NCBI GenBank assembly: GCA_038496445.1
Contig: JALMLS010000488.1
Location: forward strand, 186,001-250,000
From: Trichosphaerium sp. ATCC 40318
Lineage: Eukaryota > Protista > Tubulinea
DNA: 64,000 nucleotides
Direction: 5' to 3'
Shown here: positions 55,109-59,613 of the stretch, piece after piece
Position numbering within the stretch: position 1 is the stretch's first letter
How the letters are laid out: each line of letters starts with the position of its first letter
The notes under the pieces: model-generated
Told to the model about the DNA's origin: nothing
The model's input: only the letters and a program-made list of their open reading frames with translations
The model's database searches: none
Position numbers and translations under genes: made by a program

Positions 55109-56297
55109 TCAAAATGGCATCCACTCCCCTTCATTCCCTTTACTATCTTTATCATCACTAGCACTCCTAAAAAAATATACGTATTAGATGCATAGTAATA
55201 GACAAAGGGGGTTTTCGTTAACGGGGTTAAGTAACTTACTGAAAACTTGTCCAATCTGCTGCGTCAACATCAGCAGAGTTTACTGTTGTATCGAAATTTT
55301 CAAAAGGATTAATTAAAGTCTTTGCTGCTGGATTACTTGTAGCAGGTGGACCTCCTGATCGCGCTGATGTCACGTGAGGAATAGAAGGCGGTGGTGAAAT
55401 TTTAGGTGGGCTATTAGTAGATGATGGTGGAGGTGCTATCATCCCAGGTTTTAATAAAGGTTGAGGTTCATCATTTTTTTTAATCGCTTTTTTCTTAGAT
55501 GTTTTGATACCCTTTAAAAAAAGACATGTCAGCAAAATACTATACCCAATCTATGATACAAACCACCCATTTAGAGCCTAGAAAAAGGGAGAAGGCTTTT
55601 TGAAAGAATTTTTTTTGTCTGGAGAACAGAAAACGTGCCTTGAAATTAATGTGAATTTTTTCGCCTTCTGGAATTTGTAAGTTTAGGTCTCCAAGGTTTT
55701 CAAATGTCTTTCTTGCTTCTTCTTTGTTTACAAGGTATTTTCTGTGATCATCTAGCGTAGCTTTAAAGTCGTATGCCTGAAATTAATAACGTCAGTTAGT
55801 TGTAGTGGTTCTTTCGCGTGCCGTTGGTTTTAGTGAGAATCCTAAGCCTATGAACGCGCGTCGGCCACTTGCTAGATGGCGTTAGTTGGGTTTTATTTGA
55901 AAACGTAGATTTTAGCTAAGCGTTACCTGGGTCTTCTATTGTGAGTACGAAGAAGCGGCTGGAATCAATCGCAGCTTCAACCGAGTGTTCATTTACTTTA
56001 CATTCCGCAAAGAGTTTGTCTACGCATCAGTGAGCGTAGGGAATACATACGAGTGGAGTTTTTACCGCTTTTTGCTTCAAGCAGCCGAATATAGGCTACG
56101 TCTTCTCTTTCTACGATCCTACACCTCCCAGTCCATAGGAAGGCTGCTATATTCCAGTCCGCGGCCTTATGACCGAGTGCTGATTTACGTGGTGGTATAT
56201 TATAAACAAAACACTCGTCTAAATCCGTTAGAGGATATGTAGCATTTAAATGGAACAAACCTAATTCGCAAAGCTGCCTTTCGATAACATCTTCCAT
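55109..56297 (-). CDS. NECAP: NECAP (adaptin ear-binding coat-associated protein)
   Basis: ECFVYNIPPRKSALGHKAADW...WTGR, DSSRFFVLTIED, AFIGLGF...AYDF; C-terminal WxxF motifs (DWTSF, EWMPF). Confidence 0.92.
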
Positions 56298-56494: not shown

Positions 56495-58818
56495 TCATAT
56501 CCATTTATAGTCTTTGATTATCATGACCATACCCCAAAAAGCAACGACAAGCTATAATAAAAAAGGTTAAAAGTCATTTGAAAATGGAATAGTTTGCTGT
56601 TTAGGTAATAGTTGACTTGTACTTACGGCAATGACAGATCCACTTGCCCATGATGCGCTTCTCAAAGGTTGCATTTCAATATAAAATCCTATGGTATGTA
56701 CTACCCTTGTAATTGAATATGATATGATGAGAACCTACAAAGAGAGTAGAATGTTAGAAACTTATTTCATATTTTTTTTATGTGCTTACGCATAACGCAA
56801 TAGAATCTTTATCACCCCAAAAAGCTAGAACAGATGCAAATAAAAATATAATAAAGCTTTCAATATCATTGCGTTCAATATTACGAACTTTCTGAATTGC
56901 AGGTGTTTCTTCCATACTGTGAATAAAAATTGGTTAGTTATAATCCAAGAAAAAAAGAAGAAAAAAAAAAGAGTTTGTTGTAATGCTTCTTACACATCTA
57001 GTGCTCCTTTCGCGTATCCGTTGATGCGCATGAGTACATCATTTACAACAATGAACTTTAAAATTAAGAAAAACCAGCACCAAGCATATGTAGCTGCTAC
57101 AACACTTGCACTAGAAGCCAGAATAGCTCCCCAAAAAACAAACGAAAGCTACAATTTTTTTTAGTTATGACAAGTAAAAAACAATGAAGCTCTGCGTACC
57201 TCAACAGCTTCGCTTGCCCATGATACAAATACAGCGTACTGATGAAATTTTATACCAAGTAGTGTATATACAATACGGAAAGTAGTGAACAAGGCAATGT
57301 AAATAGCTGCAGCCCAGCTTGTTTTGTTTCCATCTAGATCACTTAGTATTATTCACAACAAAAAGGAGAGATCAAGTGACACTCTGTTGTTCTTCGTACT
57401 TATACTCCATATTGTGCAACCGATAAAGAAAGGTAACATTGAAGCTTAAGGGTTAAGGTAAGTAGTCTTCTTGATTAACAACTTTAATATGGTACCTATA
57501 TGATTACGGTGAAGCAGTTGCCATCTTTCAAGACGCTCCTCAGCTTCTTTCTCAAATAATCCCTAATAGAAACACTAAGCGACTATTTTTGATGGCGGCA
57601 GTACCTCTTCATTTGTTGGCTGTGGTGTTGATGCATCCAAAGGAACTTGTTCCTCATCATCCTCTGGAGGTAGAACAACCTTTGGTGGACCTTTAAGAAC
57701 CTTTTTGCCATCTTCGGGAGCTGCCTATTGCAGAACTTAGTATTAGGCTCGAAGCACAAGTTTGTTGTTAAGTACAGGTTTTGAGGCGCGTCCACGAGAG
57801 ATGCCAGTAGCGACTGAAGTAGCTATGAGAACACCAATCAAGACTACTGTTGCTATTGCCCATGACTCTCTAAAAGTACGGAACTCATCATTTTTAATCA
57901 GAAAAGCTTCTACTAATCCCCATACTGCCAAGACTAGCTAACAATAAAACGTCAAATGCGCAAGCAACAAAAAAAAAAGGACTACTAATGTTGTTTTTAT
58001 AAAACCACCATACCGTTGCAAGCACGCTCACAGCCCAGGAGATAGACCTATACGGCTGCTTAGCAAATGCATAGCAAGCCGTATATATGGTTCTAGCTAC
58101 AGTATAAAGCACGAAGAGCACAACCTAGAGTTCACTTAATAACCGAAAAACCATAAATAAAAATCAGTAATTTCACGCACTCCAGCGTCTCTGTCACGTT
58201 CTTGGCGTTGTTTGGCGCTTAACAAGAAAATAAAGGAAGCCATAAAGAAGGGCAAATAGCTCTCAACATCATTTCGTGCTATATTAGAAGCACGTTGCGC
58301 AGTAGTCATTTTTGTTTTCCCAGCAATTAGAGCTTGAGTCTAAATTGATAGGTGAGCACGTGGACAAAAATCAAGAAGAAAACTAGAGTTTAGCAGCGCA
58401 AGAAAATGTGACAATGAGTTTGTAAGATTATTGTGGTTACAGCCTCGTTGGCTGTTAAGCGAAAATCGCGAAAATATGAGACACAAGAGAAGACAGTGTT
58501 GAGTTGTTCTACGCGTGTTTAAAATCGCGTGTCAAAAAAAAGTGGCAGGAAAATTTTTTTTTGCTCAGTTTCAGCAATACAACAAACTACTGTGCTTTTG
58601 AGCTGTTTGGAATGTATTGTGGTGATTATTAGCGATGTTGGGCGTACTTGGGCGTTTGCATCTCCAGACTCTGTATCACCATCACTTGTCGCTTGTTGAT
58701 GGTATTGCGCATGTTTTACCTTTGAAATAACTTCCAGAATCAAAACAGCTATCATGTTAATCAATAGTACGATAACGCACATGGCGAATATCTCCACACC
58801 ATCAGAGAGTATTTCCAT
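56495..58818 (-). CDS. Protein with three tandem MAPEG (MGST1/mPGES-like) domains
   Basis: Three motif sets: RASNIARNDVES..PF / ARTIYT / QPYRSISW; RWQLLHRNHIASMLPF / FRIVYT; KVRNIERNDIES / TRVVHT / QPLRSASW. Domain junctions are continuous within exons. Confidence 0.8.
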
Positions 58819-59613
58819 GTCTGTAGAGTATGTAGCAATGATACAAACAGACTTAAACTAAAAAAAAAGTTAAGTAAACTCTTCAAATAGTCCGCGGTAA
58901 AACTAATTAACCAAGTGGCCATGTCACTAATTACATTAGCACAAAACACAACATACATCCGGTAGAGACCTTAAAACGTGGGACGAGATGCAGAGGTTTC
59001 GTAGCAGATGTCCAAATCGCAGGTAAAATCCTATGGATACTGGTCATTTGCACGAAATTTACGGAAGTAAAAATCCACCTACTGTGTACAGTGAGCGTAT
59101 ACAACCTTCGCTTGGTTACGAAGTCATATCTACCGATCTCATCAAGTGTTTATTGGAATATATGTGAACAATCTCACTGGGACCAGGAACTATGGAAACT
59201 GTGAACAAACAGATGTTACGTTTTTGGATCGATAGTGTATCCGCCACAAAATGTTAAAGGCTGCATTTCCTGTTCAAATTCTAAGGCCTGAAGAACAAGG
59301 TCTTTCTTCCGAAACATTCCTTTTTTGGTTCACTCAAGGTCATTAACTTTGTTGACCTACATAAAGCCTACAAAGAAACATTAATTGTCTGCGGCTGAAC
59401 TCTGGTCGTATTTGCGTGTCTGTACAATGAATATAACTTTCGTGGCTAAATGTACTACAAGTATACTTGTACAGTGTTTGCTCTTACGTAATTATAGTGC
59501 TACTGTGCTTTATAGTACTTCTAACAATATGTGGCCGTTATGCCACTCTCATCTTGGGCATCGGTTATCTCCTTACTCAAAAACCGCTTAAATTGCGTTA
59601 TTTTCCGAATAGA

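Follow-up and report, generated by a model that had tools for sequence, protein, structure and literature searches.

A spliced gene of Trichosphaerium sp. ATCC 40318 fuses three MAPEG units in one chain, a probable covalent pseudo-heterotrimer with one site predicted to be dead

The enzymes of the MAPEG family, small membrane proteins of detoxification, are trimers whose glutathione sites lie between adjacent subunits. Whether the three subunits of such an assembly can be carried by a single polypeptide is the question raised by a locus of the protist Trichosphaerium sp. ATCC 40318 (GenBank assembly GCA_038496445.1, contig JALMLS010000488.1). The window is the whole stretch of 64,000 nucleotides that was analysed (positions 186,001 to 250,000 of this contig), and the gene in question occupies positions 56495-58818 on its minus strand; all positions below are those of the window. 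A preliminary description made from the DNA alone had proposed that one spliced frame encodes three diverged MAPEG domains, forming a covalent heterotrimer of ~12 transmembrane segments (TM) with three non-equivalent sites. We confirm that the locus is one expressed gene in which three MAPEG units are fused in one chain, an architecture designated here as 3xMAPEG. The product is likely a covalent pseudo-heterotrimer, in which the second unit would be catalytically incompetent. Two transcripts of the euglenid Entosiphon sulcatum, P0001 and P0003, share the architecture and serve below for comparison.

The coding region extends from the start codon ATG at 58818-58816 to the stop codon TGA at 56497-56495, exactly at the limits given in the preliminary description. 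A three-frame reading of the minus strand yielded a model of 12 exons separated by 11 GT..AG introns, with no internal stop codon, that corresponds to a coding sequence of 1416 nt and a protein of 471 aa. Upstream of the ATG an in-frame stop is present and no earlier ATG is found. Spliced contigs from three public runs (X1, X2 and X3), at least 99% identical to the window, were used as transcript data. Each of the 11 introns is represented by a joint in these contigs, and ten of the joints correspond exactly to the hand model; for intron 1 the donor was initially placed at 58719, a position ruled out by the X2 contig, which places it at 58647. The contigs tile the gene: exons 1 and 2 are covered by X2, exons 2 to 9 by contig 6 of X3 (764 nt) and exons 9 to 12 by contig 5 of X3 (440 nt). 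In the latter, position 56994 is joined to 56916 and the contig continues to the 3' end, and the contigs extend ~40 nt past exon 12 into the 3' untranslated region. With 11 of 11 introns recovered as joints and the frame open, the proposal of one spliced frame encoding three domains holds.

The junctions between the units are localized inside single exons, each of which contains TM4 of one unit and TM1 of the next. Exon 4 (57776-57937, aa 148-201) is one open, stop-free exon with splice joints at both ends, in which 11 aa link TM4 of unit 1 (LVLAVWG...) to TM1 of unit 2. In exon 9 (56994-57148, aa 324-375), ~3 aa separate TM4 of unit 2 (LSFVFWG...) from TM1 of unit 3, after which the following loop begins. 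These two junction exons are single copy in the 70-Mb genome. Since both junctions fall within single stop-free exons, the locus does not consist of three separate genes, and no transcripts of separate genes were seen. The three units might still be made separately, either by three tandem genes or by translation initiated internally, for instance at Met375, with which exon 10 opens; the fused frame would then be an accident of contig assembly. The ATG of exon 10 indeed begins one base after the acceptor, the donor of exon 9 is localized 2 nt ahead of an in-frame TAA that would be read if the intron were retained, and the whole coding region is not covered by any one contig. We consider separate products extremely improbable: TM1 of units 2 and 3 share a stop-free exon with the preceding TM4, so that the products would be pieces of five and three TM, contig 5 of X3 joins exons 9 and 10 exactly at the predicted sites while contig 6 runs from exon 2 to exon 9, and retention of intron 9 is seen in no contig.

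The window and the runs differ by three single bases (57284, 57890 and 56627), all of them A>G or G>A on the plus strand. These variants are all synonymous third-position changes, one per unit (N163, T295 and A453), and they point to runs obtained from strains that differ slightly within one species. At the other end of the gene (58816-58822, minus strand), the first base of the X2 contig is the A of the start codon, with an AG two bases upstream (TACTCTACAG AC ATG). The 5' end of the mRNA could possibly lie at the ATG, with a very short leader, or the contig could stop there through a graph break at a shared leader sequence.

Are the three segments of this chain all MAPEG domains? Unit 1 (57881-58818, introns included; aa 1-166) is a complete 4-TM unit with the N, D, E, R, Y, Q-P and R-S residues intact. 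Unit 2 (57098-57880, aa 167-340) is also a complete 4-TM unit and its glutathione site is degenerate. Unit 3 (56498-57097, aa 341-471) contains four TM and intact core site residues, with a short TM1-TM2 loop devoid of the PED motif. A domain profile built solely from 38 single-domain MAPEGs recovered each of them, as expected from the proposal of three diverged domains: unit 1 with 80.4 bits (aa 6-159, profile positions 3-139), unit 2 with 49.0 bits (aa 173-328, including TM1 and the PED motif, profile positions 8-131) and unit 3 with 57.0 bits (aa 375-466, profile positions 49-140, envelope aa 339-467). The motifs of the three units align in register, with pairwise identities of 19-30%. The z-scores of the local alignments between units are 23 for units 1 and 3, 10.7 for units 1 and 2 and 8.2 for units 2 and 3, and none of 500 shuffles reaches the observed score. 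Hydropathy and profile alignment predict 12 hydrophobic helices in a 4+4+4 pattern, in agreement with the ~12 TM proposed. The Pfam profile PF01124 (cut-off 23.4 bits) was searched exon by exon. Units 1 and 3 are matched, through exon 3 (30.2 bits, over the cut-off, profile positions 84-120), exon 2 (14.7 bits, positions 47-75), exon 10 (16.2 bits, positions 44-77) and exon 11 (21.6 bits, positions 85-119), and the exons of unit 2 gave no match in this search. The TM3 exon of unit 2 (exon 8) was recognised by hhalign against an alignment of 14 single-domain MAPEGs, at the TM3 columns (E 5.3e-5). A phmmer search of the solved structures with exon 3, and a search of them with a profile of the three TM3 exons, gave no MAPEG match, these queries being too short.

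The exons distribute over the units as follows. Exon 1 (58648-58818, aa 1-57) opens with the start codon and covers TM1 of unit 1 together with the beginning of the TM1-TM2 loop; the alignment with the single-domain profile begins at aa 6. It is joined to exon 2 in the X2 contig (58648 to 58339) across intron 1 (58340-58647, joint 58339/58648, CT..AC ends on the plus strand), the sole long intron with its 308 nt, the remaining ten measuring 42-77 nt. No Rfam match was found in intron 1, nor elsewhere in or around the gene. Exon 2 (58181-58339, aa 58-110; joint 58122/58179) encodes the loop and TM2 of unit 1 with the motif ARNDVES, and exon 3 (58014-58124, aa 111-147), also recovered by a six-frame search of the genome, encodes TM3 and the Q-P-x-R-S loop. 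The second half of exon 4 aligns weakly with TM1 of the MAPEG profile (E 0.0096), and exon 5 (57605-57724, aa 202-241; joints 57723/57775 and 57561/57604), which encodes the long, acidic and proline-rich TM1-TM2 loop of unit 2, opens with the family PED motif, aligned to the conserved E-D of the profile. Exon 6 (57496-57562, aa 242-264, ending in phase 1, joints seen) carries the helix preceding TM2 with HRNHI, and exon 7 (57400-57444, aa 264-279) carries TM2 of unit 2 itself (SMLPFFIGCTIWSI); the joints of exon 7 (57444/57496 and 57333/57400) are present in X1 and X3 alike. Exon 8 (57200-57333, aa 279-323) encodes TM3 and a degenerate loop where Q-Y-A-V-F replaces Q-P-x-R-S. For unit 3, exon 10 (56790-56916, aa 375-417) encodes the loop and TM2 with the motif ERNDIES, exon 11 (56627-56734, aa 418-453) encodes TM3 and the Q-P-L-R-S loop, both with their joints seen, and exon 12 (56495-56551, aa 454-471 and the TGA stop; joint 56551/56627) encodes TM4 (LVVAFWG...). 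All three TM2 motifs reported earlier (ARNDVES, HRNHIAS and ERNDIES) are thus present, the second straddling the splice between exons 6 and 7. The three exons starting with L-x4-WG also exist (LVLAVWG at 57937 in exon 4, LSFVFWG at 57148 in exon 9 and LVVAFWG at 56551 in exon 12), but the idea that such an exon ends each domain has to be amended, since exons 4 and 9 continue into TM1 of the next unit.

The glutathione sites were compared with that of rat MGST1, which is built from A35, R38, L39, K42, R73, H76, L77 and L80 of one subunit and from R74, L77, N78, E81, Q127, N129 and R130 of the neighbouring subunit (PMC5554250). The activity of the mutants N78T and R130A is undetectable, and E81Q retains ~8% of the wild-type activity (PMC5554250). 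A residue table was established for the family-invariant columns across nine fused domains (three from Trichosphaerium and six from Entosiphon). Units 1 and 3 keep the N, D, E, TM3 Arg, Q-P and R-S residues, including the equivalents of N78, E81 and R130. The residues expected in a competent member (N78, E81 and R130 of MGST1; R110, H113 and Y117 of mPGES-1) are present in both, with two replacements: the equivalent of H113 is a Y in unit 1 and the equivalent of Y117 is an F in unit 3. Unit 2 is changed at six invariant positions (D to H, E81 to A, P to L, Y to G, P to Y and R130 to V) and, as catalytic residues, keeps only the equivalent of N78 and the TM3 Arg (equivalent of R110). Unit 2 is a member of the MAPEG fold, but its residues do not qualify it as a competent catalytic unit. 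By analogy with MGST1, its catalytic face is predicted to form a dead site, because the equivalents of E81 and R130 are gone. Of the three non-equivalent sites proposed initially, the non-equivalence is retained, as motifs and site residues differ, and the number of candidate active sites falls to two.

These losses, together with the very long branch of unit 2 in the domain tree, could also be read as the decay of the fused gene, unit 2 being a dying copy in a protein devoid of any glutathione-dependent role. This explanation is very improbable to us, for the gene keeps 471 open codons and splices all 11 introns correctly, including the four within unit 2, and the catalytic core persists in units 1 and 3. 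Unit 2 itself retains its four helices, PED, R-N, PFF, the R110 equivalent, T, Q, SW and FWG, and the three strain variants, a small sample, are all synonymous.

We consider it likely that the 471 residues and 12 helices of 3xMAPEG constitute a covalent pseudo-heterotrimer, in which two candidate active sites differ from each other and the third site would be dead; we infer its packing and its glutathione transferase or peroxidase activity. The three units of one chain would pack against one another intramolecularly and, by analogy with rat MGST1, each site would receive the TM1/TM2 residues from one unit and the equivalents of N78, E81 and R130 from its neighbour. If the units followed one another in the ring as they do in the chain, with unit 3 closing onto unit 1, a first candidate site would be composed of the catalytic face of unit 1 and TM1 of unit 2, and a second of the catalytic face of unit 3 and TM1 of unit 1, whereas the dead site would combine the catalytic face of unit 2 with TM1 of unit 3. 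Unit 2 would then have a structural role without catalysis and might bind lipids, as FLAP does.

The linkers bear directly on this arrangement. They measure ~11 aa between units 1 and 2 and ~3 aa between units 2 and 3, and such very short linkers imply that TM4 of a unit must neighbour TM1 of the next. In MGST1, the elements equivalent to TM4 and to the next TM1 line one site (PMC5554250). As a proxy for packing, the three domains of Entosiphon P0003 were submitted as separate chains to a controlled complex prediction. The three-chain complex obtained an interaction prediction score from aligned errors (ipSAE) of 0.74 against 0.30 for the best control, a mark attained by 51 of 78 solved complexes and by two of 108 mismatched pairs; the predicted local distance difference test (pLDDT) of the partners is at least 86 and at least 94% of the contacts agree between runs. 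In the modelled interface the three TM2 helices are in mutual contact at the core, and TM4 of domain 2 touches TM1 of domain 3 as TM4 of domain 3 touches TM1 of domain 1. This ring order, closable by a single chain, supports the intramolecular packing, as a model can, and falls short of proof.

Alternatively, the chain might not close on itself and its units might pair across chains, in domain-swapped oligomers (three chains giving three mixed trimers, for instance) or in a membrane lattice. MAPEG units trimerise irrespective of the chain of origin, nothing measured here sets the packing, and the complex prediction used separated chains, for which intra- and inter-chain contacts look alike. 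We give little credence to this assembly: linkers of ~3 and ~11 residues make the linked helices neighbours, the modelled C-terminus of a unit is in contact with the N-terminus of its successor, in an order compatible with the closure of one chain, and the presence of exactly three units, here and in the Entosiphon proteins, fits a closed trimer.

Several points weigh against the self-closing pseudo-heterotrimer and the evidence used for it. No individual contig or long read spans the entire coding region, and that X1-X3 are RNA is a guess, argued from the intron-less joints at GT..AG sites, which are what RNA gives. TM1 of unit 3 (aa 344-360) is hydrophobic and is recognised by hydropathy only, the hidden Markov model leaving it unaligned. 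R73, R74 and H76 of MGST1 are not conserved in units 1 and 3. The assignment of the sites rests on the analogy with MGST1; for unit 2, another ligand or the involvement of other residues is conceivable. The score of the P0003 complex may stem from the model having memorised solved MAPEG trimers, and P0003 is a proxy only 11-34% identical per domain to the Trichosphaerium units. An AlphaFold model of P0001 (pLDDT 61.5, predicted template modelling score 0.58, alignment of two sequences) was too weak and was left unused.

How did such a gene arise? The last intron of every unit is found at the same alignment column in phase 0, and the intron between TM2 and TM3 occupies the same column, also in phase 0, in units 1 and 3. 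The paralogue L001, described below, is free of introns across TM2-TM4. With the unit-final introns coinciding in column and phase, a tandem triplication of a unit that already carried introns is the probable origin of the gene. This agrees with the internal triplication proposed in the preliminary description, each L-x4-WG exon being preceded by a phase-0 GT..AG intron at the identical column.

The units of 3xMAPEG are assigned to the MGST1/mPGES-1 branch of the family. Among single-domain relatives, the closest that bears a name comes from Pythium and is designated MGST1 in UniRef. The same genome contains a paralogue, L001 (L001:1486-1737, minus strand, corresponding to G000:C56:72213-72458), which matches the structures of human mPGES-1 (2.4e-10) and of MGST1 (3e-8). 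It is a single unit with TM2-TM4 in one exon, intron-free across this segment, with a Pfam MAPEG score of 62.6 bits and the NDLEN motif kept, and is probably the conventional homotrimeric enzyme of Trichosphaerium. Six other loci (L002 and L004-L008, on contigs C110, C6 at two places, C94, C246 and C297) gave weak six-frame MAPEG matches of 17-38 bits; they are unlike the units of the fused gene and are probably members of other MAPEG branches. No multi-domain architecture is evident within the 3-kb loci of the other MAPEG genes of this genome.

To find relatives of the fused protein, 1.84 billion representative proteins were searched exhaustively with HMMER and a three-row profile of the TM3 exons. 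Among the 13 matches, P0001 (445 aa; EP01012 P026518) and P0003 (451 aa; EP01012 P042280) are the only multi-domain MAPEGs. Both are Trinity transcripts of Entosiphon sulcatum from EukProt, without functional annotation; they each contain three PF01124 domains (180 and 190 bits, respectively) and are 39% identical to each other. The search for 3xMAPEG in other protists, advised in the preliminary description, was thus fruitful. Word-indexed searches with P0001 and with the alignment of P0001 and P0003 gave nothing further at 245-780 aa. These searches relied on a 36-position profile or on shared five-residue words, which diverged fusions could escape. In the ESM Atlas, the nearest clusters are all single-domain, about 155-160 aa long. 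Fused MAPEGs are not described in the literature searched, where a single seeming match proved to be an unrelated citation, and the architecture is very rare, though not unique. Concerning P0001, its first unit is devoid of TM1, the protein beginning just before the PED-like loop, while TM1 of P0003 is full; the P0001 transcript may be 5'-truncated despite its label of complete open reading frame.

In the domain tree, the first domains of the two Entosiphon proteins pair with each other, as do the second domains, and their triplication therefore predates the split between P0001 and P0003. The Trichosphaerium units find no firm place in this tree, and approximately unbiased tests allow both a clade of the three Trichosphaerium units (p 0.33) and clades that unite them by position with the Entosiphon domains (p 0.29-0.51), so that a shared origin and an independent triplication both fit. 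We mention as a doubtful extension that the fusion could have occurred independently in Trichosphaerium and in euglenids, that unit 2 could have become a permanent non-catalytic, FLAP-like subunit with a regulatory or lipid-presenting role, and that the two remaining sites could have different substrates or roles.

The surroundings of the gene are tightly packed. A gene of the NECAP/DUF1681 type follows head to tail, with its ATG at 56297, ~200 nt past the stop codon of 3xMAPEG. Its first exon (56001-56297, minus strand) matches Pfam DUF1681 (NECAP, adaptin-ear-binding coat protein) with 53.7 bits.

The interest of this architecture lies in the way in which three sites share the work. In the homotrimers MGST1, MGST2 and mPGES-1, only one of the three sites works at any moment (PMC5554250, PMC7979937). 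A mutation introduced in a homotrimer strikes all three sites, and the asymmetry is hard to dissect. In a natural single chain with distinguishable units, each site can be altered alone and, in Trichosphaerium, one unit would already be site-dead. Trichosphaerium, with its predicted dead site, and Entosiphon, with three intact sites, constitute a ready comparison, and 3xMAPEG is a rare natural test case for the sharing of work among three sites. The domain architecture of the MAPEG family, well studied and a drug target, is also less uniform than assumed.

Compared with the known systems, 3xMAPEG resembles the members of the MGST1/mPGES-1 branch, homotrimers of 4-TM subunits that act as glutathione transferases, peroxidases or isomerases, by its four helices per unit, by the motifs R-N-D-x-E-S/N in TM2, R-x-x-H/Y-T in TM3 and Q-P-x-R-S before TM4, and by the PED motif after TM1, found in unit 2 and partially in unit 1. 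It differs from them in that one polypeptide carries three units, contrary to the three identical chains of the homotrimers; compared with MGST1, one unit has lost the equivalents of E81 and R130, and units 1 and 3 are devoid of R73, R74 and H76. The Entosiphon proteins P0001 and P0003 share the single chain of three units, the same branch of the family and the short links between TM4 and TM1. Contrary to the Trichosphaerium protein, their six domains all keep the core formed by N, E, the TM3 R, Q and the R130 equivalent, with no degenerate site; they are 11-34% identical to the Trichosphaerium units and Entosiphon is known from its transcriptome only.

FLAP (ALOX5AP) is a non-catalytic MAPEG that forms a separate homotrimer and belongs to the LTC4S/MGST2 branch. 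As in unit 2, the MAPEG fold and the trimer contacts are found in FLAP without the glutathione-activating residues. Contrary to FLAP, unit 2 is covalently attached and belongs to the MGST1 branch, and its lipid binding is conjectural. Outside the family, fused pseudo-oligomers derived from homo-oligomers are represented by SWEET, derived from SemiSWEET, and by the three-repeat mitochondrial carriers. The folds of these proteins are unlike that of MAPEG, and the same route was not found for MAPEG in the literature searched. The likeness lies in the route itself, where an internal duplication turns a symmetric oligomer into a single chain with divergent repeats, and with 3xMAPEG the MAPEG family would join the short list of membrane oligomers that have evolved into pseudo-symmetric single chains.

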